Part shown: one piece after another, positions 8,120-62,856 of the stretch
Numbering within the stretch: the stretch's first letter is position 1
How the letters are laid out: every line of letters starts with the position of its first letter
From: Selaginella moellendorffii
Taxonomy: Eukaryota > Plantae > Lycopodiophyta
Length of the DNA stretch: 64,000 bases
Direction of reading: 5' to 3'
NCBI RefSeq assembly: GCF_000143415.4
Contig: NW_003314358.1
Location: 605,109-669,108 of the forward strand
Program-made: the position numbers and the translations under genes
The notes under the pieces: model-generated
Told to the model about the DNA's origin: nothing
Databases searched by the model: none
What the model saw: only the letters and a program-made list of their open reading frames with translations

Positions 8120-8998
8120 ATGGCTCGATTCGCGGCGCCCACACCATCGCCATCGCCATCGCACAAGAAATCATCAAGATCGTGCGCTGCCGCCGAGAAT
8201 TCTCCAGCGGCGGGAAAATCTTCGCCCAGGAGGCGAGGGGGAAGAATGCCGCTCGAGCTCTTGGATCCCCAGGGCGGCGATCGGTTTGTTAGCGGCCCGG
8301 ATTTCGATTTCGAGGGCCGTTTTGCCGCCGCGAAGACGAGGGAATCTTTCCACTCGCGGCGCATGTCCTTGGCGCCGCAGCAGCAGGAGAAAGATCCATC
8401 GATCGAGCGGCGCCGGCAGAGAAGGATGTCTCTCCAGGCCGGATCGATCCACAGGCTTGACAAGAACGGCGCAAAGAAGGCGTCCAAGATCCATCCCAGC
8501 GGCGCCAACGCCAAGAACAAGGGTTCCTCGCCTCCTCCAGTCCTCGTCGAGAAGCTCTACATCGAGAAATCCGCCAGCGTTCTCTGGAGGGATGGCTTGC
8601 TCCAGCAGTGGGATAATCTCCTCGACAACACCTCTGGAGGATTCAAGAGCATCACCGTCGCCTACGAGGAGCACCGGAAGAGCCTGGAGCCAGATCCAAA
8701 GCAAGGCGACGATCAAGCACAGATTTCCTCGCCGTGTTCTTGCGAGGGCGAGACCTCCAGCAGCAAGGACATCCACATGGTGGAAATCTCGTCCGAGGAG
8801 TCCGATGTGCCGCGCATGGACGAGATTTCTCCATTTCCAGAGAAAGAGCTCGATCAAGAACTCAAGAACAAGGGCGAGGAGCGCACCGGATGGACGAGCT
8901 ATGGATTCACGGCGGCGGCAGCGCTCGTAGCGGCCGGCATTGCGATCTTGGGATGCGTCATCCATGGCAAGGTTCGTGCTTGTGTTTCCTCTAGCTAG
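8120..8998 (+). CDS. Uncharacterised protein with a C-terminal transmembrane segment (tail-anchored candidate)
   Basis: ORF of about 292 aa from ATG 8120, Ser/Arg-rich, ending YGFTAAAALVAAGIAILGCVIHGK. A 59-nt intron at 8972-9030 may change the C-terminus. Confidence 0.65.
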   Translation: MARFAAPTPSPSPSHKKSSRSCAAAENSPAAGKSSPRRRGGRMPLELLDPQGGDRFVSGPDFDFEGRFAAAKTRESFHSRRMSLAPQQQEKDPSIERRRQRRMSLQAGSIHRLDKNGAKKASKIHPSGANAKNKGSSPPPVLVEKLYIEKSASVLWRDGLLQQWDNLLDNTSGGFKSITVAYEEHRKSLEPDPKQGDDQAQISSPCSCEGETSSSKDIHMVEISSEESDVPRMDEISPFPEKELDQELKNKGEERTGWTSYGFTAAAALVAAGIAILGCVIHGKVRACVSSS

Positions 8999-10812
8999 GC
9001 GGCAGTGCTTTCTCTCGATCTCCTCGCTAGGTTTCTACCAATCCCACTGTGAAATATCCTTCCCGGATCTCTTGCCGTGCTTGCCAGCAGCACATAGACA
9101 GCGCCATTCTTTGGATCAAGCTCAAGAACACGCCGCGCGGCGTAAGAGCTAGCTTTCAGATCGTCGTGATCGCGGCAAGCTCCAAGAACACACACCCAAT
9201 TCACCGCTTGCGCCTCGAATGGCATCGTTTCCGCGAGCTCCCTCGCGGATTCCAGGCGCCCGGCGCGCCCGAGAGCATCGATCATGCATGAGAAGTGCTG
9301 GTGCGTCGGCGATCGATCGAAATCTAAGCTCATCGACACGAACAGGCACCGCGCGTCATACAGTCGGCTCCCAAGAATCGCCGGGACGAAGGAGATCTCG
9401 TCGGGGAAATCGACGGTCTTCATCGAATGGAAGAGCTGGAGGGCCTCATCGAGCCGTCCGTTTTGGCAGTAGCCAGCCAATAGCACATTCCACGACATGG
9501 TATCGCGCTCGGGGGAGGTATCCAAAAGATTCTTAGCATCAACAAGATGCCCGGCTTGGGCATATGCCACAATCATCGCATTCCAGGACACAAGATTCCG
9601 GCATTGCATCTTATGGAATATCCACTTGGCTACATCGAGATGCCCGGCTCGAGCATATTCTCCCAGCAATGCTGTCCACAACACAACGTCTAGGAGGTTT
9701 GGGTTTTGGAGAATGTTCTCCATCGCTGCATGGAGATTCCCACTGTGGGAATATACTGGGAGCATTGCAGTCCATGAGATGGAATCGTGCTCCGGCATGC
9801 TGTGAAAGATTCTCTCGGATTCTTCAAAGAGGTAGCTGTTTGTATAGGCGGCCAGCAAGCAAGAGTAGGAGACTCTGTCTTTACAGGGAATCTTTTGGAA
9901 AAGATCGGTAACATTTTTTACAAGACCAGATTGAGCATATGCTGCAAAGAGTGAATTCCAGCAGACGAGATCCCAACAGGGCATCTCAAGGAGGAGATTC
10001 TTGGCCTCATCAAGATGCCCAGACTGGGAATAGGCCTTTATCATTAAAGTCACCGAGAGAATATCCCTGGCAGGCATCTTTTCAAACAACTCCCGGGCTT
10101 TGCTGAGCTTCTTCGCTCGTATGTATGATTCGAAAAGAGTTGTCCACGATACCAAGCTCCATTCGGGCATTTGGAAGAAGATTCTCTCGGCATTAGAGAG
10201 ATCCCCAGTTCCGGCATATACTGATAGCATCAAGTTCCAAGTGATGATGTTTCTCTCGGGCATTTGAAATACGAGAATTTGAGCTTCGCTAACAAGATCT
10301 AAAATGCAGTAGCACGTAAGAAACGCATTCCAAGTTACTAGATTATGCTCGGGCATCGATAGAAAGATATGCCTTGACTCCTCTAGATGCCCTTCTTGGG
10401 CATATGCAGTAAGCATGGATGTCCAAAGAACCAGATCTCTTTGCGGGATTTCGTCCAGAACTCGCTTAGCGTGTGCGAGAGAGCCACTCTTCACGTATGC
10501 GACGAGCATAGTCGTCCACAGTATGAGATTCTTCCCTTGGATTTGATCAAAGAGCTTCTGGGCGCTGTTGATCTCGCCGCTCTTGCAGTACCCGGAGAGA
10601 AGGTGGTAGTAGGAAAAAGAGGATGGGTTTTCCATGGAGTCGAGAACCTCCCTCGCGCGCTCGAGGCTCCCCAGCCTCGCGTACATCTCGATGAGCTTGT
10701 CGTGGAGGAATGCATCGTGTCCGAGCAGCGGTTTGATGCGCTGGTGGATTCGCAGCGCGGTGGCGATGGTGGAGCAGTCCTGGATTTGCTGGATGCAAAA
10801 GCTTCTCTCCAT
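8995..10812 (-). CDS. PLS-class PPR protein (SS-repeat array, E domain)
   Basis: Intronless; tandem repeats of about 31 aa (MPE.NLVSWN.ML.AYAQ.G); E-domain signature HFSCMIDALGRAG...YVLLAS. Confidence 0.92.
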   Translation of the reverse strand: MERSFCIQQIQDCSTIATALRIHQRIKPLLGHDAFLHDKLIEMYARLGSLERAREVLDSMENPSSFSYYHLLSGYCKSGEINSAQKLFDQIQGKNLILWTTMLVAYVKSGSLAHAKRVLDEIPQRDLVLWTSMLTAYAQEGHLEESRHIFLSMPEHNLVTWNAFLTCYCILDLVSEAQILVFQMPERNIITWNLMLSVYAGTGDLSNAERIFFQMPEWSLVSWTTLFESYIRAKKLSKARELFEKMPARDILSVTLMIKAYSQSGHLDEAKNLLLEMPCWDLVCWNSLFAAYAQSGLVKNVTDLFQKIPCKDRVSYSCLLAAYTNSYLFEESERIFHSMPEHDSISWTAMLPVYSHSGNLHAAMENILQNPNLLDVVLWTALLGEYARAGHLDVAKWIFHKMQCRNLVSWNAMIVAYAQAGHLVDAKNLLDTSPERDTMSWNVLLAGYCQNGRLDEALQLFHSMKTVDFPDEISFVPAILGSRLYDARCLFVSMSLDFDRSPTHQHFSCMIDALGRAGRLESARELAETMPFEAQAVNWVCVLGACRDHDDLKASSYAARRVLELDPKNGAVYVLLASTARDPGRIFHSGIGRNLARRSRESTAA

Positions 10813-11351
10813 TGAAGACCTTTGGTAGCATTTGCGTAAAAGAGAAGAGAGAATCTTTTGAAACGTATTGTGCGCGAAACTTAGTCGCCCAAAACAGTAA
10901 AAAAGAAAAATGCCACCTTGGTTTCTGGATCGCGCAACCAACCAGATCAAGATAAGACGCCGCGCGAACACCGCCCAGGGTCTCTCGCGAATTAAATTCG
11001 CTGCGCTGCAATCACCTATCCATGCCTTTAAATGTATGCACAGATTTCCTGGGTTCTGGGAGCGCGGCGGTCTCGCTTCCATCGAGGAGAAATGGGAGCA
11101 CCGAACGAATCCCCGAAAGGCCAAGCCAAGCCAAGAAAAAAAAAAGAGAGAAAGAAACGAGGAGAGAGGAGAGGAGAGGAGAGGATCAAATCGTGCTCGT
11201 TGCAATGGAGCTTTCATGTATAGAGCTTTGACAATAGAGTTACAGACAACACCAAAGACATGGAGGAATCAAACTGTACAAAGGGGAAGAACAGTAGCCA
11301 CCGCCGCTGGGCTTTGGAGGCTGTGTTTCTTCGCGGATCGATCTTTCGCCA

Positions 11352-11806
11352 TCAGGGATTGAAATCGTAGATGTAGTCGACGTGGTCCTGCTGCTGATGA
11401 TCCGGATGATCGCGCGGCGACGCGGTGAGCTTCTACGGAAGAAATCAAGCGTTAAAAACAAGTATCTCACTCCACCCCAAGTGAATCTCACCTCAGTTTT
11501 TCCACCGGCCACAGCACTCGCGGACGCTACCGCGTTGACACTCTTGTCATTCGCCACTGAAACAAAACAAAGAGATCTCTACATGAGCGATTTGCAAGAC
11601 AAAGTAGCCATGAAGCAACGAGCGTTCATGCAAAGCCATGCACTTCTTTCTCCATAGCTAAAAACTCATCTCAAAGCTTACACACACGAAGAAACAGATA
11701 GTGTATGGAGTTAGAGCTAGAGCTTGCCTGTGGAGTCCTTGACAGGCCTGGCAGCCATAGCAGCGGCCACTAACAGCACAAAGAAGAAGAAAACGAGGCG
11801 AGACAT
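11352..11806 (-). CDS. Secreted phytosulfokine-like precursor A (74 aa, 3 exons, ends HVDYIYDFNP*)
   Basis: Exons 11806-11728, 11556-11492 and 11432-11352 splice in frame (first intron GC-AG, second 59-nt GT-AG). Signal peptide MSRLVFFFFVLLVAAAMAARP. Paralogue at 50961-51579. Confidence 0.8.
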
Positions 11807-11992
11807 GATACAATCGATCAAAAGCTTGCGAAATCTTTGCAGAGACTCGGAGAAACTCTTTGGAGCTGCGCTAGAGATCTAGAGCAATGAAACAAGTTTG
11901 CCGAGAAAGAAAAAGAGCTTCCAAAGACTAGCTTTCGAGCGAGCAAAGAGGAGAAAAGAGAGATGGAGGACGAAAGACGACGGCGGCGGCGG

Positions 11993-12079
11993 TGTATATA
12001 TACGGCTCCAACAAAGAGACACGGCGTGGACGGATAGGATGCGATCAAGGAAGACAAGGCCTGCAAGCGCGACACGTGG
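11993..12079 (-). promoter_or_regulatory. TATA box and G-box upstream of precursor A
   Basis: TATATATA at about 11995-12002 and CACGTG at 12073-12078, upstream of a CT-rich 5' leader. Confidence 0.45.
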
Positions 12080-12342
12080 ACGGCATTGACCAGACAGAAT
12101 GCTGACTAGGAAGAAGCCACAAATCCAAACTAGATAAAATAGAAACCATGGAAGAACTCTCTCCATTAATTTTGCGGTGTTTCCAAAGAGAGAGCATGTC
12201 CCCCAAAATCTTTTATTTCATTTCATCCAATCTTGGAAGTTCCAACTATAGAGACTGTGATCCTCTCAAGAATGCTTGATATACACAGTGAGTTCTCCCA
12301 GAGATATCCAATCTATAAACTATCTCTACGCAAAGATTTACG

Positions 12343-21153: not shown

Positions 21154-23158
21154 TCACGAGATCACGGCAACGTCCGCTGGTGTCAGCATCTCCTTCCCGA
21201 CGAGCTTCCCGGATCCTGTCCTAGTTTTGAAGCTCCCACTGCCTTTGCCACGCGCCTCCCTCCTCGAGTTCTTGGATCCCGGCTTCTCAATCGCAGCCTT
21301 GGACTTCGGTGCCTCACCATCGCTCTTCTCCTGTGCCGCCGCGGTAGCAGGCTCCACTACACTATCTAAAGTCGCATTAACAACACTATCCTGGTGATCG
21401 GCGTCTGTAGGAGCGTCAGCTGTCTCCGGAGCGCTTTCCAGACCGAAGTCCTTTCCCGTATCACTATCTGCGTCCCCCCCGGATTCGGTCCCTGCCGATG
21501 CGTTCCTCTCTACCACCCCGTTTCCCTTGGTTTCCTCCAGCACCCCGACGCCTTCAACTGTCCCATTGCCGAGGACCTCGTTGGCTGGCTTCTCCTTGCC
21601 CTTCACCTTCTCACTAGAGATCTTCCCCGAGAACGACTTCCTGATCGCCTTCTTCGACGGGACTACGTTCTCCTTGACTTGTTGCCCGTTGTCTAGCTTC
21701 TTGGCGTCTTCGTTGTCGGTGTGCTTGCCGTTCTCGGACTCCGCACCGCTGATACTCTTTCGCCTGCCCAGCTTTGGAGATCTTGCGCGCGTCGTTGGGA
21801 TCTGCATCCGTTTTAAAAAAAGTTGGTAAGCGCACCAACTATCAGCCATTCCAACCTTTCTCAGCTCAGCCTTAGGAGGAGGAGCCTCCTGGTAAAAGCT
21901 CGGCATTGGAGTTGCCTTGAAAGTGAGGCTCTTGCGAAGCTGTTTGATTTCAGCTTCCATCTCCTCCTAATGATCGATTGTTAGAACGCAGAAGGAAAAG
22001 AAAGGCTTTTCCACGCACCTGTGTTTTGGCTTGAATCTGACACTTCTCCGCTTCTTTGGCGTTTAGCTTTTCCTCCAGCTTTGAATAGAACTGCAGGCAC
22101 AAAACTACATAAGGATTGGAAGACTTGTAACATCACGTACCTCTTTTCGCTTTTCTGCACGTTCATCACATTTGAAGCTGAAAGTGGAGGCAGCGGCATT
22201 TTTCCTGTCTTTTATGCCAAATCCAGGCCTGCAGATTGATGCAAACACTCAACACAAAGCAGAAAGACATAAGGCTTACGATGTGCAAGATCCAACTTCG
22301 CTGTTTGCATCACTCACTTCCTCTTTCTGAGGGGGCCTGCAGCCATAAGTTCCCGTTAGAAAAGATAGGAAAAAACGTAACTAGAAAACTGTACTTTAAG
22401 GCTTCCACACTTAATGGTCTTACAGACGAAGGTTTTGTGGTCACCTTGCTAAGAACCTGCAACTTAAACTGAGCAAAGAAGCAACACGCAGCTTAATACC
22501 TGAGACTTTCGGATTGGCTGGGACGGTATTACGGGAGTTGGCTTAGCAGGTTGTTTAGCAGGAGCTTCAGTAGAAGTTGGCAACAGTCTGCTGCCACCGA
22601 GTGAAGCTCTTTTATCAGTTGCCAGAGCAAATGGTTGCGGAACTGTAACCGACGCCGTCGTTCGAGAGCTCTTTGGAGCTGGGTCAGCAGCCGACTCCTT
22701 TCTAGCTTTTGAAGGAGCCACAGGATTGCTTTTGGGCCTTGCCGTCGTCGCATTAGCAGCAGCCACCGAAGTCTTAAAGCTCGACGAAGACTTCTTTGCC
22801 GGGGCTGTGCCCTTCGGATTCTTGGCATTTTCAGATCTTCTCTCCTGCAAATGCAAACAAAAAACCATCTGTTTCCTCCTCTGTCTCCAAAACAATAAAC
22901 TATCAAGTGGGTCGTACCAACCTTCACAGGCTTCACATGGCAAGCGTTATCCTTTGCAAGGTTTGATTCCTCCGAAACCCCCATACCATCGTGAACTCCA
23001 TTACTGTTCTCCTGACCGCCCGAAACTTCGATAGCTTCTCCTGATCCCTGGAACTCCTCGTCACCATTCTCCTCCTCCAAGTCCATGTCGTCCACATTGC
23101 TGCTCCTTGGAGCGTCCACCACTTCCTTAGGTTCATCACCTGTGCCTGATCCCTCCAT
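21154..23158 (-). CDS. WVD2-like (WDL) microtubule-associated protein, TPX2 C-terminal domain
   Basis: [18 protein letters not shown] motif, [16 protein letters not shown] and [13 protein letters not shown]; multi-exon; the start codon is tentative. Confidence 0.88.
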
Positions 23159-25195: not shown

Positions 25196-26962
25196 TCAAA
25201 GTCGAAGTTTTGGGGAATTCTTCAAGTCCCATTCGCTCGAGTGTTGGAGAATGTTGGCCATGAGCACGTACGCAGCTGAGTTGCAAGGATCGAGCTCCAG
25301 TATGCTTCCGTATGCGGCCCGACCAACGTCGACGTTTTTCCACTTGTGACAGGCGCCGAGAACACTCATCCACAAGCTTGGTGTGGGCGAGGCACCGGAC
25401 ATCCCCCTCAGTACTGCCACTGCTTCGTCGAGAAGGTTAGCTCGGCCTAGGAGGTCCACCAAGCAGCTATAGTGCTCGATCCCTGGAGTGATACTGCGCT
25501 GCGTCATAGCTCTAAACACCTCCTTCCCGTTCTCCACATGTCCGGCGTGTGCACACGCTGTGAGAACCGTAAGATAGGTGACCGAGTCCGGAGCTAAACT
25601 CGTCCGACACAGAGCTTCGAATGCTTCCAGCACTTCTGTGATCTCTCCCTGATGGCTATAGCCTGCTAGCAGCGCGTTCCAAGTTACCAAGTCGATGCTT
25701 GCCATGGACTCGAAAACTTGCCGCGCTCGATTCATACTTCCAGACTTCCCGTAGAAATCCACCAGAGAAGTTGCGACTCCCGGCTGGCCTTCTACTCCAG
25801 CAGTGCATATCTTGGCATGAATTCTCCTCCCAGCTCCGGAAAAACCTTGGCTTGCGCAAGCCTTGAGCATGGCCACAAAAGTTGCTGGATTCGGAGCGCA
25901 GCCATCACCCTCCATTTTCTCAAAGAGCTCTAGCGCCATCTCTGCCTGTCCACCTTGTGCATAGCCCAGTATCATCGCCGACCACGAAACCACGTCTCGG
26001 AAAGACCTCTTCATCCTCTGGAAAATGCTCCAAGCCTCTCCCAGGCTTCCGCACTTGCAGTACATATCCACGAGAGAGCTCGCGATCGAAGCATGGAGCT
26101 CGAATCCAGAGCCTCGAATCTGACAGTGCAAAGCTCGCCCGATCTCCAAGCTCTTGAGCTTCACCACCTTTCCATCCACAAGCTCGCCTTCTTCGACCAC
26201 CGCTAGAGCCGCGCAAGCTTTTATCACTGCGAGGTAAGTCACTCGGTTTGGAGCGCAAGGCATCCTCCGGAAAGTTTCTAGCGCCAACTTTGCATCGCCA
26301 GCCTCGGCAAATCCCAAGATCATCGCACTCCACGAGACGACGTTGCGTTCTTCCATTCTTCCAAACAAATCCCGGGCATCCACCGAGCTCCCACACTTCC
26401 AGTACAGATCCACCAGCGTGCTGGCCACGAACAAGTCCGATTCCAATCCGTTCTGGCAAATCTCCAAGTGAAGAGCTCGAGCGGTTTCGAGTGCCTGTTC
26501 TCGAGAGTTCTCGCAAGTCGCGGCACAAGCCTTGAGAGCCGCCAAGTAAGTGACGCGATTTGGAGCGATGGAATCGTCGCTGTCTTGCTTCATTCTCTGG
26601 AAGAGTCCTAGTGCCAAATCCCCTTTCCCATTCTCGGCGTAGCCCAGGATCATCGCACTCCAAGACACCACAGAGCGATCTTCCATGGCATCGAAAACCT
26701 CGCGAGCCTCGTCGATGCTGCGGCATTTCGCATACATAGTGACCAGGGCGCTCGCAATGTCGGCGTCGATGCCATCGTCGCCATGGAAGCCCGGGGATGC
26801 CCGGCGATTCTTGATGATGTAATCGTGGATTCGCTTACCGGACTGGAAATCCCCGACGCGGCCGCACGCCTTGAGCGCTGCCGCGATGATGGATTTCGTC
26901 GGGGAGGAGCCCTCGCTCTGGATCCGGTCGAAGGCGTGGATTGAATCCCTCACGCTGCGCAT
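25196..26962 (-). CDS. PLS-class PPR protein with E domain
   Basis: Intronless P-L-S triplets (VVSWSAMILGYA / PNRVTYLAALKAC / LVDMYCKCG) and E domain HYSCLVDLLGRAN...AYVLMANI; telo-box just upstream. Confidence 0.92.
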   Translation of the reverse strand: MRSVRDSIHAFDRIQSEGSSPTKSIIAAALKACGRVGDFQSGKRIHDYIIKNRRASPGFHGDDGIDADIASALVTMYAKCRSIDEAREVFDAMEDRSVVSWSAMILGYAENGKGDLALGLFQRMKQDSDDSIAPNRVTYLAALKACAATCENSREQALETARALHLEICQNGLESDLFVASTLVDLYWKCGSSVDARDLFGRMEERNVVSWSAMILGFAEAGDAKLALETFRRMPCAPNRVTYLAVIKACAALAVVEEGELVDGKVVKLKSLEIGRALHCQIRGSGFELHASIASSLVDMYCKCGSLGEAWSIFQRMKRSFRDVVSWSAMILGYAQGGQAEMALELFEKMEGDGCAPNPATFVAMLKACASQGFSGAGRRIHAKICTAGVEGQPGVATSLVDFYGKSGSMNRARQVFESMASIDLVTWNALLAGYSHQGEITEVLEAFEALCRTSLAPDSVTYLTVLTACAHAGHVENGKEVFRAMTQRSITPGIEHYSCLVDLLGRANLLDEAVAVLRGMSGASPTPSLWMSVLGACHKWKNVDVGRAAYGSILELDPCNSAAYVLMANILQHSSEWDLKNSPKLRL

Positions 26963-27939
26963 TCCATTAAACAAAAGTTAGGGTTCTTTCAAAGAATTGA
27001 CCGTTCAAACTTGAGATTTTTCATGTGGTTTCAATAGAAGCATTCTTTAACTACCATTGATCAGTTAAGAACTTTTTGCTCTTTTAGTAAATTGGTTCTT
27101 CCAAGCAAACACTAAGAGAATAAGAAATGCTAAAAAAAATTATTTAGTTAAAACATAAAATTTTATTAAAACTTTGTTACTAATTAAAGGTTAAAATAAG
27201 AATTAAATCTAAATTAACAAATTAGTTCATGTTTGATTTTTTATATTTGTTTTTAAGGAGCGTTAATAACTTAGAATGCAATAAATCCCAAATAAAAATC
27301 GTCATCGATGCGGCACTTTGCTCGGAATCTGCAATATAGTCAACAAAAGCAAAGACTATATTGCATAAAAGCGCTTTAAAATTTGCAACACAGCCAACAA
27401 AAATAAAAATTATATCGCGTGAAGGCGCTTCCAGATCTGTATCATAGTTACCAAGTGTAAAAGGGCCTTAACATCCTATATGCAAAAGAGAAAATTAAAT
27501 GTAAATGCGTTCATTCAATATTTAGTGTTTTTTTACAAGAATATTAAAATAAAATTAATTTTTAACTTTAAGATTAATTAATATTTAAAATAAAATGAAA
27601 AACTTTAGTTCAGAAAGATATTAAAATGATGTGTAAGATATCATTAAAAAATATCAATGATATAGCAAATATAAAAATTAACATTCTAGAAACGTTTATT
27701 GTTATAAAATTCAGAAGAAATAAATCTACTACTATAAGGAGCAAACGCCGAACTTTGTGGGCCGCCGGATCTGGCCAATCACAGCCGTCCGATGGAGGGT
27801 AACTGTAAAGGGGTTATTTCTTTAACCACGTGTTAGCGAATAATCGTGCTGATGTTTGCTCCCGGCCAATGGGAGGCGGCCAAGCCGCATGGGGCAGGAG
27901 AGGAAGGCCCAGCAACACGTGGCACATGCAAAGTGTTGA

Positions 27940-29550: not shown

Positions 29551-31547
29551 CAAAGAAGTCCAATGAAACCAGTTCCAGGAGACATTTTGTATCTCCCGAA
29601 CTATTTTTTGCTGTATATCCTGATGAAAATGGCAGTAAGAGGTGTGAGAAAAATTCCAAGTTGAACTAACTCACAGTGAAACCCTGCCTCCCCCCCACCG
29701 CAATATAGACTGTAGTTCAAAGTTCGTTACTTGAGAACAAAGAGTGAAAACTAAGTCATGATGAGAACTCCCCAATTCTTATGAACCGCACAAATCTAAC
29801 TTAATTTTTCACAGGCATTTTGCACAGGCATCTGCCTATCCTCACTCAAAAGTAGTCACTTTACTTTTAAACCACATTAGATCAAAAGTGCAAAAGATCA
29901 AAATGTTGAAACCATATTAGAAGTTAAAAAGTAAGGCTTATTACTAGATGATTAGGGTTTCTCTCAAACAGACATCATTTTTTGGCTAAATCACAACTGT
30001 GGGGGGCTTTAACAATAAAAGTACATATTTATATTTTTATATGTAGCCTTAGTTATTTATAATTATCAAAAAAACTACGATAATGTATGTAGTATTTGAT
30101 TAAACAATAATATTTTAAAATATTTTTACTAATTTATTAGTATATAATACTATGGAATATAATATTTGAAATTATTATATATATCTATAAATAATTATTA
30201 GGTTGATTGGATCTGGGTAGTAATATATTAATGTTCATAAAAACTTATTGTTTTATATTTTGAGTAAAACTTATAATTAATTAATGTCTTGCAGTAATTA
30301 TTCTCTTTTATTTGTTTTTAATTTTTTATTTGTCAATTTGTTTTCTAAATATATTCATATTTCCAAATAATAATTTGTATATAATATTTTTATGAATGAA
30401 TATTTTATCTTATTTATGCCTAGGAATATATTTTTTCTAAATAGTTATATTAATCAAGTGTACAAGAATTTATTTATTTATTCATCTAGCATTTTCTAGG
30501 CATAATTCTCTCAATCAAAGTGGAATATAATATTTGTTGTTTAAATACTATTCTAATTTAGTTTTTAATATATTAAAAAATCAAAAAAATATTTTGCTAA
30601 TTACACAGCATATGCTGGGCAAGTGCTAGTATTTACATAACAATGTTATATAATATTTAAAAAAAGGTAAATTTTAAATTGGTTTCTACTTTATTTAACA
30701 TCTTTTTGCTATGGTGGTGTACAGTAAAATCTTATAAGTAAAATTAACTTTTCTTTACACCCAAATAAAAACAATATTTAAAATAAAATGTAAAATTTAG
30801 CTCAAGATGAATTTATAAGGTATTTTCTCAAAAATAAAATTTAAATATTAACATTATTTTCTTATATAAAATGTTTTGGATAAAAAATTATTTTTCTCTC
30901 ATAATTATTTATATTAGTCAATTTTTAACTATTAATATAAAAAATTCAAATTTATATAAAACTTTAAACTAGTTCATTTTTACATTACCTTTGGAGCTCA
31001 CAAGAAGTGTTTTGTCAATTTACTTTTTAAGTAATTTTTAAAGAATATTGAATGAAGTATTAAAATTTATATTTATAATAATATAAATAATATGCAAAAA
31101 TGTGAATATTTTAAATAAGCTTATTTTATCTTCTTGCTAAATTTATATGAGTATAAAAAATTAAAAAAATCAATGTCTATATCATTATAAACTTCAAATA
31201 CAATAATTTTTCTATATTATAAATTGCAAAAAGTTAGTTATATGTCACCATAAATTTAAAATGTATTACTTTTTCACACTATTAAGTTTTTTCTCATGAA
31301 TATTTATATAATTCTAGATGGTCAATAACATATAAATATATATAATAATTTAATTTTTGTTTATATCTTTAAATATATTATATCAATTATAGTAGATAGA
31401 TTTTAATTATTTAAATTTTAAATATTAAAAATATATAAAATATTAAACTAGCTAGTTTTAATTTCTAGTTTTTACTTTACCTTCAGAGTTAATAAAAGTT
31501 ATTTGATCAAATATTTGAATAATATATAAATAATATAATATTTTATA

Positions 31548-31722
31548 TGTGAGGGCCAAGTGTACAACTATGATGCCATATACTAATATTAGCGTAGTGA
31601 GATTTGGTAGCTGTCGGATTGATTTTAATCCGGACCATTCACTCTTGTATATAAGATAGAGTTTTTGGGCTAATTGATATTCACATTTTCTGTATTCTCA
31701 TTTCATATTCCAAACACTTATA
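31548..31722 (+). repeat. 5' LTR (about 175 bp)
   Basis: Starts TGTGAGGGCCAAG; homologous to 48754-48927 and, inverted, to about 37358-37521. Confidence 0.85.
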
Positions 31723-34700
31723 TTGGTGGAGTTGAGGGGCACCTTTGATTGTTCCTGAGGAGTGATTGAATTTGGGATTTTAGTTTAGATCTAACTTTTG
31801 CATTGTCTAAATCTAACTTTTTCCATTTCTTTTTTTTTGTTTTTTCTTTTTAAAATTTTGGTTTAGATCTAGCATTTTGCATTGCCTAGATCTACCATTT
31901 CTTTTTAGCTTTTTGTCATTTCTCTTGTTTTGCTCTTTCTTCGTTCATCTTCATGGTAGATTAGCAATCTCCTCCTTTGACTTTAGAGTAGCAATTGGTA
32001 CAATTGCTTGATGCTATGTGTTTGCAATTGAACAACTAAACTCAATTGATGGCAGCCTTCACGGCACATTCTGCTCTTGGTGCCAATCCTCACGTTCAAC
32101 TGAAGTTCTTTCTCAGGAATCTTGGGGATGATGTGTACCATTGGTTTGATCACTTCACGGTGATTGCCACATATCATTATTGGGATGATGCTCCACGTTT
32201 GCATGAGTTTCCCATGTGTCTTCAAGGGACAGCGTTGTAGTGGTACAATGGTTTGAGCGCAGCCACTCGTGGGGATTGGAGTGTTCTCCTAGATGTTGTC
32301 AAACCCGCCTTCGGACATGCCGACGATTGTGATGATGCCTTCCAACAATTGCATCATCTTTGCCAAAGGCCATCTGAGTCGGTGATGCAATTTAGTGTTT
32401 GTTTCTAAAGTCTTTTGCTTCGTGCGGAGCCAAATATGTCAGAGTTAATCAAGTTAGAAATCTTGTGGCCAGCACTTCATCAAAATCTTGTTGTTGGACT
32501 TGTGCATGCACTTGCTCTCGCCACCCTTGACAATGCTCTTTGCTTGGCACAACGTTATGAGACGTCGTTTCTTTCACTTCTCACTGCACATCCTTTAGCT
32601 CCACTTCCTATGGGTGATGGTCCTATTCCAATGGAGGTTGATGCTGCTGCTGCTCGAGTCCAAGGATAAGGGCGAGGACGTGGTCATGGCCGTGATGGTC
32701 ACTATTAGGCGTGTGATGAAGTTAGTCATACTTAATAGACATTGTTGGCATTTTCCGGATTGGCGACCTCCATTTTCTGGGTGGAGACTTTGGCGTCAGC
32801 AATGTCCTGTTGGTGCTGCTGCAGTGGAAGGTTTAGACACCAAGATGCATCCGGGAAATGAGGAGTCGCGCGAGTAACGGAGGGACCTTACGCAAATAAG
32901 TTAGTGACCCCTCTATCTTTCTTTCGGGAGTATTATCAAAGGGTTCACTCAGCACCGGTTTATCCAGTGTTTACTTTCCAAGCTTGTTTTTATAACAAGA
33001 AGTCTCCTATTATTCTCTCTATGTTGGTTGATACAAATTTGAGTTTATCTTCTATTGCTCAACCTGTTGCCACACATTGCTATCTACACTTGCGTCGTGC
33101 AGTAGAACCAGTTTTCATTCTTTATGGCATCGGCCATACACATGCATGTGCATGGGATGAGGTGGACCTAGTTGTGCATGTAGGTGATTTTGAGCTTGAG
33201 TTGCAGTCATTGTGGGTGGTGCCGAGTCAAGCTTTTGACCTCATTCTTGGTATGGATTGGTTGCAGCGCAATTATGTCAAATGTGACTTTGAAGCTTCTC
33301 CCCCTTGTCTCATACTTCTTTATGTTTTATCCATTCCTCTAATTTCTATACCTCTTCATCCCTCTACTTCTACCTTTGCTTCCATTACTTTTGTTCCCCC
33401 ACTATTTCTTCCTGTATTTCTGTTTTGTTTTGCTCTTCCCTTTTCTGATCCCTCTAACGATCTTTATGTTGCAGTGGTTGACTGGCTCATGAAAGAGTAT
33501 TCTGATCTCTTTGAATTTGACCTATCGTTTTGGGGCCAAGATTGCCACATATCATCCGACTTCAACCGGGAATGCTCATCCAATCAAAGTTCCTGTTCAT
33601 CATCAGTCACCCAAGGAGATCAAGATTTTACATGCAAACATCAAGGAGATGTTGGAGAAGGGTGTTATTCAGAAGTTGCGAAGTCCTTGGGCATGTGAAC
33701 CTCATCTTGTGACGAAGCCTGATGGGAGTATTCGTTTTTGCATTGACTATTGTCTATTAAACGAAGTGATGATCCAAGATGTGTACCCTTTTCCTCACAC
33801 TGCTAATCTCTTAAATCGTCTGGGGCAAAGTCGTTGATTCACTAAGCTAGATCTTACTTCTAGGTATTAGCAAGTACCAATGGCTGAAGAAGATATTCTT
33901 AGCTTTTCGTACACCATTTGGTTTATACGAGTTCTTGGTGATGCAGTTTGGTTTGAATAATGCTCCAGCAACTTTCCAGCGGATGATGGACGAGGTTCTT
34001 TGCAATATAAGTGTTGGATTGGCTACGCAATGTTGGTTTAAAGTTGAAGCAGTTGAAGTGCATGTTTGGGTCCAAGGACACAACTTATCTTAGGTACCGT
34101 ATTTCTCGTGATGGTTTGCAAGTTAATCCTGACAAACTTGTGGCTGTTCTAAAGTTCCATACTCCGAAGTGTGTGAATGATGTGCAATGTTTCCTTGGCA
34201 AGATGCAGTATCTCGGTCATTTTGTGCATTATCTTTCTGATCGCACTGCACCGTTGCGAGCATTGCTGAAGTCATCAACATTATCTTTCATTTGATCTCC
34301 GGATTGTGAGCAGGTGTTCATGGATCTCAAAAAGCTATTGACAACTCCTTTGGGTTTGGCATATCCTAACTACACTCGACTTTTTATTTTGCGCGTGGAT
34401 GCTTTTGACATTGGTCTTGGAGGTGTGTTGATGCAAGAAAGCTCGAGTGTGCCTGGTCAGCGCCATCCCATTGTGTATATAAACTATACATTACAATTAG
34501 CAGAGATGAACTACTCCACGATAAAGAAGGAGTGTTTAGTAGTAGTATGGGGTTTCAAGAAACTTTATGCATATCTACATGGTTCTCAGATGTTATTTGA
34601 AGGTGACCATGCTGCCGTTACTTCATTATTGAAGCGAAAGAACTTGGTTTGTCATACTACTTGGTGGGCTTTGAAGTTTCAGATGGGTTTGAGAATTCTA

Positions 34701-35355
34701 CATCACTTGCTGATGACTTGCCTTTTCAGCATTTACATTCTCAATATCGTCTTGAAGATAACCTTCTTTATTTTGTGGGGACGGATCTTAATGATCATTT
34801 ATGGCTGGTGGTGCCTTCTATCTTTATTCTGCGGTTTCTCCATGCCTACCATGATTCTCTTGTTCTAGGTGGGCATATGGGACATCGTCATATAACCGAG
34901 AAGCTGCGCAGGTCTTTCTATTAGCCAGAGATGCGACGTGATATTATCTGGTATGTGCGTAGCTGCATTTGGTGCAAAGATCGTAATACTCCCCCTCGTG
35001 TTACGGAAGGACAGTTGGACTCAATTGCAGTTTCCCGTCTATTTGAGTTGATGGCATTTGATCTTATGGGACCTTTTCCAAGGTCGACTGCTGGCAATGA
35101 GTATGTTATTATTGTTTTTGACTACTTAACTCGTTGGGTGGAAGATGGTGCTCTTGCTAGCGCCTCTACAACTGCTGTTGGATACTTCCTCCTCAATCAA
35201 GTGGTGTTTTAACATTTTTGTCCAGAGCGGATTCTTTCGGATAATGGTCCTACATTTATGGTTGAGGCATTTCATGTTTTGACGTCTCGGTTGGGGATAC
35301 GCCACACTTTCACGAGTGATTATCATCCACAATCAAACGATCTGGTGAAATGGCT

Positions 35356-36095
35356 CGTTTGGGAGTATCATCTTTCTTTTGGGAGTATCATCAAGGGGTT
35401 CACTTTGCACTGGTTCATCCAATGTTTACTTTCCAAGCTCATTTTTATAACAAGAGGTCTTCTATTCTTCTCTCCATGTTGGTTGATACAGGTTCGAGTT
35501 TATTTTCTATTGCTCGACCTGTTGCCACACGTTGTCGTCTACACTTGCGTCGTGCGGCGGATCCAGTTTTCATTCTTTATGGCAACGGCCGTACACATGC
35601 ATGTGCACGAGATGAGGCGGACCTAGTTGTGCGTGTGGGCGATCTCGAGCTTGAGTTGCAGTCGTTGCGGGTGGTGCCGAGTCAAGCTTTTAACCTCATT
35701 CTTGGTATAGATTGGTTGTAGCGCAATCATGCCAAGTGTAACTTTGAGGCTTCTCCCCCTTGTCTCATACTTCTTTATGTTTCATCAATTCCTCTCACTT
35801 TTGTACCTTTTCGTCCTTTTACTTCTACCTCTACTTCCATTACTTTTGTCCCCCCACTATTTCCTCCTATGTTTCCATCTTGTTCTGCTCTTCCCTTTTT
35901 TGATCCCTTCGGTGATCTTTGTGTTGCAGTTGTTGATCGGCTCATGAAAGAGTGTTCTAATTTCTTTGAATTTGACATATCGTCTAGGGCCAAGATTGCC
36001 ACATGTCATCCAACTTCAACTGGGAATGCTCATCCAATCAAGGTTCCTGTTTGTCGTCGGTCACCCAAGGAGATTAAGATTTTACGTGCAAACAT
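35356..36095 (+). repeat. Internal duplication of the protease region of the gypsy element
   Basis: Closely matches about 32924-33645. This copy keeps LVDTGSS, whereas the first copy reads LVDTNLS. Confidence 0.85.
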
Positions 36096-36099
36096 AATA

Positions 36100-37521
36100 A
36101 AACTTGGCTTTGCCACATGACATAATTATAGATGACAATATATGGCAATAGGTCAAACAATAGAAGATAAACTTGACTTTATATCAACTAATATAAAGAG
36201 GTTAATAAAGGATATTTTGTTATAAAAATGAATTTGGAAAATAAATATTAAATAAATTGGTGTTAAGTGAACTCTTTAATAATACTTTAGAATGAAAAAT
36301 GAAGGGGTCATTGATTTATTCATGCAAAGACCCTTCACTACTTGTATGATTTTTCATTTCCCAAGAAAATCTTTATATCAAGATTTTCCACCACAATAAC
36401 TTTAATAAAACATTATTAATGCCAAGGCCTCCACCCAAAAAAAGAGGATGCTAATTTGGAAAATACTAATAATACCAATATATGTGGCTAACTTTATCAC
36501 ATATCTAGCAGTAAACATTATAGCCATAACCATCATCGCCCTTATCCTTGAATATGGGTAACAACAACATCAACTTTTATGAATAATATCATCTCTAATG
36601 ACACACTTTGATTTACACAATGATATGAAATATTGTATTTCCCATTTGTCGATGTACATACTTTAACTCCACTTCATGTGAAAGGTGGCTAGAGAAAGTA
36701 TATACACAAGTCCCATAAGATCTTGACGAAATGCTAACCACAACATTTTTAATTTGATTTGCTCTAACATATTTAACTCTACATAAAACAAAAGGCTCTA
36801 GAAGTGAATGCTAAATTGCACACTTGGCTCAAATAACATTTAATAGAAATAATGCAATTGTTAAAACACATTATCACAATTATCAATATGTCCAAATATA
36901 TGGTTAATATGTTCAAATGAAGGCTCCAATCCAAATGAATGGCTACCTTTAAACCATTATACCACTATAATGTTATCCTTTGGAAACATATGGGAAACTC
37001 ACACAAATATTAAGTATTGTCCCAAAAATGATAAATAGCAATCATTGTAAAATGAGAAACTAATAATATATATCATCTTTAGAATTTCTATGAAAGAATT
37101 TCTGCTAAACATGAGGATTGGTAGACCGAATAGAAAGAGCTACATCATACATTATAAATGCCACTATCAATTGAGTTTAATTGTTCAATTACAACCATAT
37201 AGTATTGAGTAACTGCATTAATTATTACTCCAAAGTTAAAAAAGAAGGAGGTTACCACTTTATCATGAAAAAAAATAAATTACAAGAATAAAAGAGATCT
37301 AAATAATATAAAATCTAAATCAAAAACATTCCTTGGGCACAATTAAAGTTATCTCTAATGTGAATACATAAAATATGGAAATAGAATACATAAATATGCA
37401 TATTAGATTAGCCCAAAAGCCTTAACTATATATAGGAATAAGTAGTTTAAATTAAAATTAAATCAATATCTATCAAAATCCTACTATGTTAATATTAGTA
37501 TATGCATTACTTGCACCTCAT
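36100..37521 (-). mobile_element. Older inverted copy of the same gypsy family (5' LTR and gag remnant)
   Basis: The reverse complement of about 37358-37521 matches the LTR, and 36900-36990 matches gag at 32220-32300; strongly AT-shifted. Confidence 0.75.
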
Positions 37522-37985
37522 AAACCAAAAAAAGAAAAAAAATTTGAAAGTTCCAAAAACTTAAAATAAATCTGAATTCAGATTTTATTATTTAGCAAGC
37601 ACAAAAGCCCATTTTTACAGCAATTTAAATAATATGGTATAAATTTGATCATCCATTTTAGCACATTTGATAGAAAATAGTTATTAGAAAAATCACTTTT
37701 AAGTCTACCACTTTACTAATTACATAAGATTATATTAACGATTTTTGTTTTGCCCATTTTATAAAAAAAATGTATGGAAAAAATATTTTATTACCCTTAA
37801 TCAGGAAACCAATTGTTCCTTTGTGCCACCTTTGCAAATTACAAAAAAACTGAGGGAGAAATGTGATTCCTACCCGCGGCAGCTGGATCGAATTACAATT
37901 CTCTAGCTCCTCCCATTGATTGAGTTACTTGAGAGAAGAAATATTTTCCCAGTTTTAGGGTTTGTGAGGAGGTAGGGCGAGGGAA

Positions 37986-40587
37986 ATGGCGCCCAAGAGG
38001 CAATCTGCGCGGCTAATGCAGCAGAGGCTGCCAGAGGAGGAGCAAATGAGAATAGCGCTGGCAAATTCCATGAAGACTTTCAAGGAAGAGCAACGCCAAT
38101 GCGCCGATCTCTCTCACTTGGACGACGTCAAGCTGGACGCTACGCAGCGCACGACGCAGGTTTTTCGTCGCAGGAAGCGTCCACGCCAGGTACGCCTCTG
38201 TTTGAGATCTTGTTGTCTAGAGGACAGTTCTTTAGATTTCTCCATTCTCGGTTTTTAGACACTGCCAGGTCCTTTGGAGTAGATTGTTGGCGTGATCGAT
38301 TTCGATGTTTTGCAGGAGGAGGACGAAGAGCCGGCGGTCTCAAACGGTGGAAACGATGAAAATTCTGGCAAAAGCCGGTATGTAGCTACATCTCGCAAGC
38401 ACTTGAGCAAAAACTTATTGTTGTTTACGCAGGACTATGGACGAGATTGTTGAGAGCACTGAGATCTTGAAGGTCGGTCTCATGAATTTTTTCTTTCTTT
38501 CTTTGCTGATGTGCTGCTTACAGGACGCGCCGGCTAAAGCCCGTTCTGCCGGAAAATCCAAGGTGACTCGGTCTTTTTCTTTCCTGGGTGATCCTTGATT
38601 TTTTCTTTTTTTCGCTTGTGTTCTAGCAGTCGAAAACAACTAAGCGCCAGAAATCCCTCAAGCGTCTGATACCCTCAACCAAAAAGTAGTCGGAGTGATG
38701 TTTTGGTGCCAAGCAAGCTGATGCCATTGTGTTGCAGAAAAAAGAAAAAGGACCTCGTTAGGAGTTACTTTGGATTCTCTGCGGTATAGTCAAGCGTTCG
38801 TTGGCTTTCAACTAAATGTTTTATTTGCAGCCTGGAAAACTAGAAGAGCCATCGCCTGAAGGTTCCAATGAGGTGAGCCATTTACATTCTTGTGGTATGT
38901 AACAGCTGCCAGTTCCAGGAAGTTCTTTTAGTTGACGATGAAGACCATCTACAAGATAGCGAACAGCAATTGAAGAGGTAATGTCGGGAAGCTTTGCTAG
39001 TCACGTTTTTCACCCTTTTAAGATCAGATGTGGAGTGAAATTTGCATATCCCTCTCGGTACGTATTTGTTATATAGCCACTTAGCCTTCTGACTTCTCCA
39101 ATCTTTAGTAATGATCCGGAAGCAGTAGAAGTCGAAGAACACCATTTGCAATGTCTAGCGGAACACGAGTATGTCAACGACACAATTATTGATTTGTATA
39201 TCAAGTACGTTTCGCAAAGTTCTTACTGCTAAGCCCCAAGTTTATTTGTCACAGGTACATTCTTGTATCTCAATCCACAGAACTGGAGAGGTTTCACGTT
39301 TTTAACAGCTTTTTCTTCAAACGGCTCGCTCAAGCAGTTTGCGACGAGGTGAGGCTAATTATCCTTTTTCATGTAAGAGATCATCTTTGTAGGACTACGT
39401 TGAAAGCGTTGGCAAGCTACGGAAATGGACGAAGGGCGTTGACATCTATGACAAAGCCTACGTTTTGATGCCTGTCCATCAGCAGTGAGTTTGATTTTTT
39501 CGCTCTGTGGTTTCTTCTTGACACTTTCGCAGGATGCATTGGAGCCTTGTTGTGGTTTGTTTTTCAGGCCCGAAGCCTGGATGCCATATACTTCACCTTG
39601 ATTCTATGCAAACTGGGCACGTTAGTCGTCCTATTTATGAGGTTGTTCGCCGGTACGTGAATTCTCGGGTTTTGTTTGCCATTGCCTGGTTATTTGACAG
39701 GTACTTGGCGGCCGAATGGATTTCTCATGGTGGTGAGAACAAGGACTTTAAGAATGTTCATGAAAGGAAAGTAAAGGTATGCACGAGTCTCTTGCAACTT
39801 TTAAAGAGTCTGTCGTTCTTCTTTCTCTTCTGCAGGTGCCAAAGCAGCAAAACGAGTACGACTGTGGCCTTTTCATGCTTCATTACATTCAGCAGTTTTT
39901 GTCAAAGGCTCCAGCCAGTTTCAGCGACTCCATGGTCAAGGACATGGTAGTAAGTTTTTTGTGAAACACGAGTTCTTATCGTGAGCTCCTTTTGTTTTGC
40001 AGCATGCATGGTTCTCACTAGCCGAAGCATCCAAACTTCGGACCACCATCCGGGACATCACGGACAAGATATTCTTCCCGAAAGAAGGTAAAGAGGAACC
40101 GGCGTTGGATTCGGTCGCTATCGACGGGGCTACGAAGCCAGAGTCAGAACAGGATCCTTCAGCTGCATTCATCAACGAAGCAACTGTTGAAGGCTCGAAT
40201 GGCGATAACACCACCCAGCAAGCAGTGACAAATGATACCACCCAGCAAGCAGTGGCGAATGATAACACCAACCAGCAAGCAGTGACGAATGATCCAGCAA
40301 GTGTTCCCAGCAGTGAGGAGAGACGCGATGATGATCCAGCAAACGTTCCCAGCAATGAGGAGATACGCGATGACCATCCAGCAGGAAATCCTAGCAGCGA
40401 GGAGATACTTCCAGCTAGCACTGGCAACGATCCGGTAAACAATTCCAGCACTGAGGAGATAGTTCCAGCCAGCACTGGCAACGATCCGGCAAACAATCCC
40501 AGCACTGAGGAGATAATCCCCGGAAGAAGTGATCCAGATGGGATGGTTCCGGGAGAAAGTCACGAAGATCATCCAGCGAGCAGCTAG
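37986..40587 (+). CDS. Ubiquitin-like-specific (SUMO) protease, peptidase C48 (ULP), multi-exon
   Basis: YVNDTIIDLYI, FHVFNSFFFKRL, RKWTKGVDI, HWSLVVVC, LHLDS and QQNEYDCGLF (His/Asp/Cys triad); acidic repetitive tail. Confidence 0.9.
40200..40520 (+). repeat. Imperfect coding tandem repeats in the ULP C-terminal tail
   Basis: DNTTQQAVTN x3 followed by about 5 copies of DPAN.PS.EE. Confidence 0.8.
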
Positions 40588-50519: not shown

Positions 50520-50960
50520 CGCCAATTCCAGATAAACCCTAAAACCCCAAAACAAAATATCTGGCTGCTCAAGAGATTCGAACTCGAAAGCTGTTAAACC
50601 TTTAGTTTAGAACTAATGATTGCTCATTTAGGTGTTTGTTAAAACCAACCTGGTGCCGCCAACTTTGTTTTAGTCTAACATTTGATATGTGAGTCTGTGA
50701 TTCATTAAACACATTCGCTGTTACGCCTGCGTTCTTATCTTGATCTCGTTGGTTGCCGCCTCCAAAAACCGAGACGGTGGTGGAAATAGGTTGACCGTAT
50801 CGTATTCGTCCACTCCCAGTACAAAAACATGCCATTGGAGCAGGATCGACTGTAGAGCTTCTTCTCCGTCTCTTTTTCTTTTCGAGAGTACTCTAGCTAG
50901 AGCGAAGTGTATATGTAGTCAGTATAGATAGCGTATTTCCAGCAATCCATCGCTCGATCT

Positions 50961-51579
50961 ATGATGTCTCGCTTCATCGTCTTTGGTTTGGTGCTAGTGT
51001 TTGCAGCCACCGCTATGGCTACTCGACCTCTCAAGGGCTCCACAGGCAAGTCTTAAGGCCATTTGTTTATGATTCTTTTTTATGGCGTTTCTATCTCGTT
51101 TTCCCTCTTTTTTTTTCGATCCATCATGGTTGCTTCGTTTCGTTTCATACTTTTTTGTTGTTGGCTCTCGATATTTGGCTAAATAATGTCGAGAAGTCTT
51201 TTGTTTTGAGTTCACTCTTGAAACTCCCGATTTTCTTTGCCTCTGGCTAAGTCCTCGTCTTGTTTCAGCAGTGACAAGTACCAAGAGTGAAGCCAATGGC
51301 ATGACGAGTGCTGGATCCGTTGCTGAATCCGACGCTGCTGGCAATGATGCAGAAACTGCTGTAAGATTTATCCCGTTAAGTCTTGTGATCACGATTTTTA
51401 AACGCTCTTTTATACTACAGGAGGCGTATGATCGAAAGGAAGAATCGCAGTGTGATGATGAGCAGCAAGAGCAGCCTAATGTCGACTACATTTACGATGG
51501 ATATGATCGGAGGAAGTCACAGCACTGCCACCGCCGCCACCCGTCAGGACCAGATCTCTTCGAAGCGGCAGCCCCGTGA
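50961..51579 (+). CDS. Secreted phytosulfokine-like precursor B (about 111 aa, 3 exons, NVDYIYDGY...RRHPSGPD)
   Basis: Exons 50961-51045, 51269-51360 and 51421-51579 are in frame; GC-AG first intron with a NAGNAG acceptor; signal peptide MMSRFIVFGLVLVFAATAMATRP; paralogue of 11352-11806. Confidence 0.8.
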
Positions 51580-61920: not shown

Positions 61921-62005
61921 AAAAGCTGGCATCTATACATATAAAGCGATAGTGGGGAGGCTCGCCGGCCGTTGGATCCCAGGCCCGGGCCAGGGTCGGT
62001 GGCCA

Positions 62006-62856
62006 TGGTTGCGCGAGAAATTTTTCTGATGTTTGCTCCCGGCCAATGGGAGGCGGCCAAGCCGCGTGGGGCGGGAGAAGAAGGCACAGCGACACGTGTG
62101 CCAGTGGTGTCCTGCCCCCGTGCCCGTTCTTCTGAATGCCTCGACTGGCTCGACACGCAGGAGCCAGACTCAGTCCTCTATGTCGCATTCGGCAGCATAG
62201 CGAAGCTTTCGCAGGAGGAATTCGAGGAGCTCGCGCTCGGTTTGGAGGCGAGCAAGGTGCCGTTCTTGCTCACAGTCAGGCCGCCCCAGTTCGTGGACGA
62301 GGGCGACACGACAGTCCTGGTGAAGAACAGTGACTTCTACAAGAACTTCGTCGAGCGGACCAAGGGACGAGGCCTGGTGGTTTCATGGGCGCCGCAGAGA
62401 GAAGTTCTGGCGCACAGGGCACTGGCTGGATTCGTGAGCCACTGCGGATGGAACTCGGTCCTGGAGAGCGTCTCCAGCGGCGTGCCGATCATCTGCTGGC
62501 CTCGGATATACGAGCAGGGGCTCAACCGCAAGATCATGGCGGAGAGGTGCCGCATCGGGGTGGAAGTTTCGGATGGGAGGAGCTCCGACGCGTTTGTGAA
62601 GCGGGAGGAGATTGCTGAGGCCATTGCGAGGATCTTTAGCGACAAAGCTCGAAAGGCGAGAGCGAGGGAATTCAGGGACGCGGCGAAAAAGGCAGCGGCG
62701 TCGGGTGGTGGCTCTCGGAATAACCTGATGCTGTTCACAGACTTGCTGATGTTTGCTCCCGGCCAATGGGAGGCAGCCAAGCCGCGTGGGGCGGGAGAAG
62801 AAGGCACAGCGACACGTGTGCCAGTGGTGTCCTGCCCCCGTGCCCGTTCTTCTTAG
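62006..62856 (+). CDS. Chimeric ORF: captured C-terminal half of a UDP-glycosyltransferase between Helitron-derived direct repeats
   Basis: CLDWLD...VLYVAFGS and PSPG box WAPQREVLAH...HCGWNSVLE...EQ; the N-terminal acceptor domain is absent; the frame is open through both repeats. Confidence 0.7.
62026..62853 (+). repeat. 108-bp direct repeats (62026-62133 and 62746-62853) flanking the UGT fragment
   Basis: The two copies are 720 bp apart with one mismatch seen. Confidence 0.95.

Follow-up and report, generated by a model that had tools for sequence, protein, structure and literature searches.

A transcribed Selaginella gene for a putative phytosulfokine-like precursor with a Y-I-Y-D core

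Does a short minus-strand gene of the lycophyte Selaginella moellendorffii, lying at 11806..11352 of the 64,000-nucleotide stretch of DNA analysed here (the window), encode the precursor of a sulfated hormone of the phytosulfokine (PSK) type, given that its core reads Y-I-Y-D? The question is of interest because the time of origin of PSK signalling is unsettled, and the candidate described here hints at a hormone type older than the seed plants. Indeed, an expressed lycophyte gene that combines Asp-Tyr and Y-I-Y with a new fourth residue offers a concrete peptide for testing, and it would add a further case of annotation missing peptide-hormone genes, which are tiny and, here, contain a GC-AG intron.

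A transcribed three-exon gene and its predicted product

The gene (hereafter copy A) is read on the minus strand from an ATG at 11806 and comprises three exons with 26 + 1 + 21 + 26 codons, 74 in all. The coding part of exon 1 (11728..11806; 26 codons plus one base) carries the start codon, the signal peptide, the residues ARPVKDST and the first base of the split codon. It is followed by a phase 1 intron of 171 nt (11557..11727) of the GC-AG type, the donor of which reads CAG/GCAAGC and the ends of which appear as CT..GC on the plus strand. Exon 2 (65 nt, 11492..11556) translates into a variable, Ala/Ser/Val-rich portion of the propeptide, and intron 2 (59 nt, 11433..11491) is of the GT-AG type and in phase 0. 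The coding part of exon 3 (11352..11432) yields, by translation, a His/Asp/Gln-rich stretch, then the motif, ending in ...QQQDHVDYIYDFNP before the TGA stop at 11354-11352.

The RNA evidence consists of assembled transcript contigs and covers 10900-12200, the region of copy A. A 517-nt contig from run X1 (study P1) and a 498-nt contig from run X2 (study P2) match the window from 11215 and 11233, respectively, to 11960 with zero mismatches, and both omit exactly 11433-11491 and 11557-11727, including the intron with the GC donor. Exon 1 is thus joined to exon 2 between 11728 and 11556 in both contigs, which also hold the second junction of exon 2. Of the words sampled from the stretch, no more than roughly half occur in each of the two runs, as expected of an exon-only transcript, and run X8 represents the unspliced genomic form of the copy A locus. 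Of X10, a raw-read RNA run with the same species label, 12% was read; no reads turned up, which is no test of silence. The mRNA of copy A therefore exists, and since the contigs omit exactly both predicted introns, splicing in vivo follows the predicted junctions, even at the GC donor. The preliminary description of this DNA had proposed the same coordinates and the same three-exon, 74-codon reading with a GC-AG intron, and had named the splice junctions as its own check; translation and transcripts agree with this reading, the junctions being present base for base in contigs of two independent public studies.

The contigs also extend the gene on both sides of its coding part. The 5′ UTR measures at least 154 nt (11807..11960, minus strand) and holds no upstream ATG, so that the open reading frame (ORF) starts at the first AUG, while the 3′ UTR measures at least 137 nt (11215..11351, minus strand) and stops at the first ATG of an adjoining PPR ORF. 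A TATATATA box-like element at 11995..12002 on the same strand precedes the contigs, which begin at 11960, by ~35 nt and may belong to the promoter. The gene appears to be unannotated.

The 74-residue product is predicted to be secreted. Its first 18 residues (11753..11806, minus strand) would form a signal peptide with a basic n-region (MSR), a hydrophobic core of 13 residues (LVFFFFVLLVAAA) and A-M-A at -3/-1, which by the -3/-1 rule would place the cut before ARP. This region was delimited by hand and by hydropathy, and the Kyte-Doolittle means over nine residues reach 3.4 there. The propeptide that follows the predicted cut counts 56 residues, without any cysteine and, by its residue composition, with only two tyrosines, both inside the motif. 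A His/Asp-rich segment (DHPDHQQQDH) precedes the motif, and the C-terminus reads D-H-V-D-Y-I-Y-D-F-N-P. The VDYIYD core (11364..11381, minus strand), located by pattern match, contains the Asp-Tyr sulfation signal and the sole two tyrosines past the signal peptide; it lies ~8 residues from the C-terminus, and the motif ends three residues (F-N-P) before the stop.

The paralogue, the conserved motif and the search for relatives

The preliminary description had pointed to a paralogue at 50961, and this second copy (copy B) is real: it occupies 50961..51579 on the plus strand, has a signal peptide of the same type (...AMA/TRP), the GC donor and VDYIYD, and would encode 110 codons. From homology to copy A, its exons and splice sites are expected as follows: exon 1 at 50961-51045, a GC donor at 51046, exon 2 from 51272 (or 51269, NAGNAG) to 51360 and exon 3 at 51421-51579; the CAG/GCAAG donor and homologous borders of exon 2 are common to the two copies. 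The motif of copy B lies at 51481-51498 (plus strand), where exon 3 reads ...QPNVDYIYDGYD, then Arg-Arg-Lys and a tail of 23 residues. The motif is thus followed by GYD and a basic RRK site, and it ends 28 residues before the stop. In copy B the His at -3 is missing, and exon 3 encodes one Cys. A weak alignment links the coding extension of copy B to the 3′ UTR of copy A, and it therefore appears that one of the two copies gained or lost a stop. Taken together, the secreted-precursor anatomy put forward at first is borne out, with a signal peptide in both copies and the motif near the C-terminus.

Two features around copy B deserve a separate mention. Its tail (51499-51579, plus strand) contains HRRHPSGPD, which loosely resembles the P-S-G-P-D/N centre of CLE peptides, without their C-terminal P-x-H-N. 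In addition, a short ORF at 50899-50920 on the minus strand ends in TDYIYTSL and a stop, antisense to a TATA-like region upstream of the copy B ATG. Despite its canonical-looking DYIYT it was rejected as a PSK precursor, since it lacks a signal peptide and overlaps, in antisense, exon 1 of copy B; we take it as a chance occurrence, although an odd coincidence.

The identities between the two loci were obtained from a forced alignment. Over VDYIYD, 17 of the 18 bases are identical, and the lone difference (ATC/ATT) is synonymous. Coding exon 1 reaches 75% identity, and exon 2, the remainder of exon 3, both introns and both UTRs show 45-55%, a background against which the probability of at least 17 matches in 18 is about 1e-5 to 3e-4. 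Moreover, the pattern coding for DYIYD was counted two times in the 64-kb window versus 0.16 expected (with one mismatch allowed), a number that was not attained in any of 100 shuffles. The His/Asp-rich stretch varies between the copies while VDYIYD is kept, and the reading frame, the intron phase and the motif are all retained in copy B despite ~50% identity elsewhere. VDYIYD is the sole strongly conserved piece apart from the signal peptide, and this conservation is purifying. The earlier suggestion that the motif is under selection, because VDYIYD was kept while most of the propeptide diverged, is accordingly sound, since 17 of 18 identical bases are improbable at the background identity and the DYIYD pattern exceeds its expectation.

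A recent segmental duplication of the precursor together with its PPR gene was considered and rejected, as blastn between the flanks gives exon 1 alone, at 74%. Because nothing but exon 1 is detected, copies A and B are, judging from their sequences, old dispersed paralogues, the PPR neighbours of which were not co-duplicated.

The PPR gene next to copy A (8995-11217, minus strand) is an intact ORF of 740 codons that begins 135 nt past the copy A stop, its first ATG (11217) lying at the 3′ end of the contigs. A GA-rich microsatellite (11114-11194) occupies the first codons of this ORF, and the true start is therefore probably further downstream. Its best database relatives show 29-38% identity, and exact look-ups with the neighbouring PPR genes matched no allelic or orthologous locus. 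Two further intact PPR genes, one of them with an E motif, lie at 25196-26974 (minus strand) and 53883-56171 (plus strand), and three PPR genes per 64 kb agree with Selaginella having a very large PPR family. Elsewhere in the window, GC falls to 0.20-0.29 in AT-rich blocks, 30-32 kb and 36-38 kb; between them lie ORFs that encode, at 32904-33695, an aspartyl protease domain of the retroviral type, and the region 30000-38000 is probably a retroelement remnant. An ORF with a UDP-glycosyltransferase domain (61972-62853, plus strand) and one with a TPX2 domain (21154-21957, minus strand) are ordinary plant genes, unlinked to the peptide gene.

Relatives were searched for exon by exon rather than with the joined 74-residue product. 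A protein word search, using copy B exon 3 and the alignment of both exon 3 pieces, gave no candidate sharing three 5-residue words among proteins of ~29-94 residues, so that HVDYIYDF-like words are absent from annotated or predicted proteins of this size. When the exon 3 alignment was run as a profile against 1.84 billion representative proteins, only two repeat proteins (P0001 and P0002) came up, both unrelated; their matches, nine and six in number, are to the basic tail of copy B. Pfam, PF06404 included, had no family to match the exon pieces of copies A and B, even with a cut-off of E<=10, a blank of little weight since these pieces are 26-52 residues long, and in the ESM Atlas the best score for copy B exon 3 (0.79, a plasmid recombination enzyme) is noise.

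A metagenome scan with the HVDYIYDF coding pattern yielded 11 contigs, none of them with a small precursor carrying the motif at its C-terminus. In about nine the motif lies within a long repeated ORF (...LLSIHVDYIYDFGRRALIRR...) and in one within an enzyme-like ORF; L003 and L005 are AT-rich and have in-frame stops near the motif on both sides. The repeated ORF, GC-rich and with ...LLSIHVDYIYDFGRRALIRRTRD..., was seen in L001, L002, L004, L006-L009 and L011, from samples Ga0272449, Ga0079995 and Ga0079992, and probably represents a multicopy element, eukaryotic or bacterial, that has nothing to do with the peptide gene. Overall, the protein word, profile, ESM Atlas and metagenome searches gave no relative outside the S. 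moellendorffii genome, which shows the gene to be absent from the predicted protein sets over the size range covered, and a full-text literature search for DYIYD or YIYD gave no plant example. The novelty that had been guessed at the outset thus holds within the literature and protein databases searched, and a potentially disulfated Y-I-Y-D core in a plant would be new relative to this literature and to the annotation.

The proposed reading and its alternatives

We give somewhat better than an even chance to copy A being the precursor of a tyrosine-sulfated peptide of the PSK type, either YIYD or YIYDF. In terms of function, the features of its sequence suggest that it most likely works as a PSK-like precursor, and in terms of descent, homology of the Selaginella gene with PSK is about evenly balanced, leaning slightly towards a common origin. 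The PSK-like reading had already been advanced in the preliminary description, and part of it stands: H-x-D-Y-I-Y near the C-terminus, Asp at -1 and the secreted anatomy all agree with PSK.

If copy A is a PSK-like precursor, it would enter the secretory pathway and lose its signal peptide after A-M-A, and a Golgi tyrosylprotein sulfotransferase (TPST) would sulfate both tyrosines of D-Y-I-Y through the Asp-Tyr signal, as in PSK. A phytaspase-type, Asp-directed subtilase could then cut past the N-side Asp, as in the tomato and Arabidopsis PSK precursors. On the C-side, either a second cut past the second Asp would produce the tetrapeptide YIYD, or the last residues would be trimmed, by analogy with PSK, to give the pentapeptide YIYDF (copy A) or YIYDG (copy B). 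Since Asp stands both before Y-I-Y and at position 4, one Asp-specific protease could free YIYD in both copies, irrespective of the residues beyond it (F-N-P in copy A, G-Y-D-R-R-K in copy B). The sulfated peptide would finally act extracellularly through an LRR receptor kinase, either PSKR-type or lineage-specific; no receptor gene was found in the 64-kb window. The sulfated N-terminal tripeptide is reported (Matsubayashi et al. 1996) to be the active core of PSK, in which case the change at position 4 need not abolish binding to a PSKR-type receptor.

Several published observations bear on these steps. TPST genes have been reported in S. moellendorffii (PMC8462819), and a survey of 2026 places the sulfotransferase already in early green plants, "the enzyme preceding its substrates" (PMC13074997). 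Every PSK precursor of tomato and Arabidopsis has Asp at -1 (PMC9662189; bioRxiv 10.1101/2020.10.21.349779), a tomato phytaspase cleaves the PSK precursor past the N-side Asp, and Arabidopsis SBT3.8 makes the C-side cut of proPSK1 in dependence on Asp at P1′ (bioRxiv 10.1101/2020.10.21.349779). As for the tetrapeptide length, YIYT (PSK-beta) has been seen as a degradation product (PMC9662189). A stronger proposal would make YIYD(F) the phytosulfokine that lycophytes actually use; it is possible and at this stage doubtful.

Among the alternatives, the one that survives best holds that the two copies form a lineage-specific family of tyrosine-sulfated peptides that came to resemble PSK by convergence on D-Y-I-Y, with its own receptor and without descent from the ancestor gene of seed-plant PSK. 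Indeed, the similarity to PSK is limited to ~6 residues, Pfam is blank (on short exon pieces), the absence of cysteines and core positions 4-5, and perhaps the exon number, are unlike PSK, and DY-initiated peptides arose several times (PSY, RGF, CIF). A survey of 126 species from 2026 also detected PSK solely from gymnosperms onward (PMC13074997); its authors caution, however, that precursors that are short and unannotated could have been missed. Convergence would moreover have to account for many coincidences, namely H-x-D-Y-I-Y, the C-terminal position, the signal peptide and the precursor length, and an ancient origin is plausible given the putative PSK-like genes of moss and liverwort (PMC8462819). 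We therefore regard convergence as rather unlikely.

A different kind of product, a small secreted, acidic and His-rich protein that is no hormone (for instance one that binds metals, associates with the wall or acts against microbes) and keeps the motif for some use other than signalling that depends on sulfation, would fit the His/Asp-rich DHPDHQQQDH segment before the motif and the 28 residues by which copy B runs past it. However, it is precisely the His/Asp-rich stretch that was not kept between the copies, whereas VDYIYD was, and to keep a six-residue island while the rest of the propeptide drifts is characteristic of processed peptide ligands, which makes this explanation improbable. 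That the transcript is real and the ORF is no functional coding sequence (a non-coding or decaying copy), as might be argued from RNA seen as assembled transcripts only and from the blank 12% of X10, is very improbable, since the ORF runs intact from the first AUG over two junctions and its frame, intron phase and motif, with a synonymous change only, are kept in a paralogue diverged by ~50%.

Comparison with phytosulfokine and other sulfated peptides

PSK precursors, 80-120 residues in length, begin with a signal peptide and carry the pentapeptide close to their C-terminus, preceded by Asp at -1 (PMC9662189, PMC7734187); by comparison, copy A is slightly short with 74 residues and copy B is predicted to have 110. 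The PSK cores described are YIYTQ, YVYTQ, YIYTN and YVYTN (PMC9662189), in agreement with those given in the preliminary description, and YIYTH of Arabidopsis PSK6 adds to this list (PMC11211552). Seed-plant PSK-alpha (PF06404; sulfo-Y-I-sulfo-Y-T-Q) has in common with copy A a small precursor with a signal peptide, a motif within the last ~10 residues, Asp-Tyr and Y-I-Y, and both share His at -3 (H-x-D-Y-I-Y) and have few residues after the motif. In contrast, core positions 4-5 are Asp-Phe in copy A and Asp-Gly in copy B, versus Thr-[Gln/Asn/His] in every described plant PSK. PSK genes have two, sometimes three, exons, and copy A has three, with a GC-AG first intron. Upstream of the motif, seed-plant PSK precursors also have paired cysteines and basic residues, with A-H-x before DY, whereas copy A has no cysteine and, of this upstream region, only the His at -3. 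An adjacent conserved motif in PSK precursors is mentioned by Furumizu et al., the details not being spelled out there (PMC8462819).

The variation among known PSKs gives a measure of what the family tolerates. In the legume peptides PSK gamma (YVYTQ), delta (YIYTN) and epsilon (YVYTN), and in Arabidopsis PSK6 (YIYTH), positions 2 and 5 vary while the architecture and Asp at -1 stay. All of them keep Thr at position 4, where copy A has Asp, and they are active as synthetic sulfated peptides, whereas copy A is known here from sequence and transcripts.

Copy A comes from a lycophyte, a group without a described PSK in the literature searched. Putative PSK-like genes have been listed in moss, liverwort and spruce, those of bryophytes lacking the Asp, and none has been reported for Selaginella (Furumizu et al. 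2021, PMC8462819). The bryophyte candidates (Marchantia, with YIYTSQ, and Physcomitrium; PMC8462819) resemble copy A in having Y-I-Y in a small secreted precursor and in being putative; they keep Thr without Asp before Tyr, whereas the Selaginella gene keeps Asp-Tyr without Thr.

Other sulfated peptides of plants (PSY, RGF/GLV/CLEL and CIF/TWS1) are likewise secreted, bear the DY signal and depend on TPST, and Asp-dependent processing by subtilases is documented for RGF/CLEL. The PSY, RGF and CIF peptides are Pro-rich, 13-21 residues long, with a single sulfated Tyr and, after DY, a family motif of 12-20 residues, such as DYxxxxxKPPIHN (RGF; PMC8462819). Copy A, in which only F-N-P follows DYIYD and no such family motif is found, was rejected as a member of these families.

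The closest match to the core itself is found outside plants. Root-knot nematodes have PSK-like effectors, treated as mimics of PSK, in a theta class (DYIYDN) and an omega class (DYVYDN), the core of which has been called nematode-specific (preprint PMC13081851). Like copy A, these effectors have a small secreted precursor with a C-terminal motif, and the theta core D-Y-I-Y-D shows the same Thr-to-Asp change; they differ in being animal genes with unrelated propeptides, and in having Asn after the core, versus Phe (copy A) or Gly (copy B). At the level of sequence, a plant DYIYD contradicts the nematode-specific status of the Thr-to-Asp core (PMC13081851). If YIYD(F) were a true lycophyte PSK, the nematode DYIYD(N) core would copy, or converge on, a type of ligand that plants themselves make.
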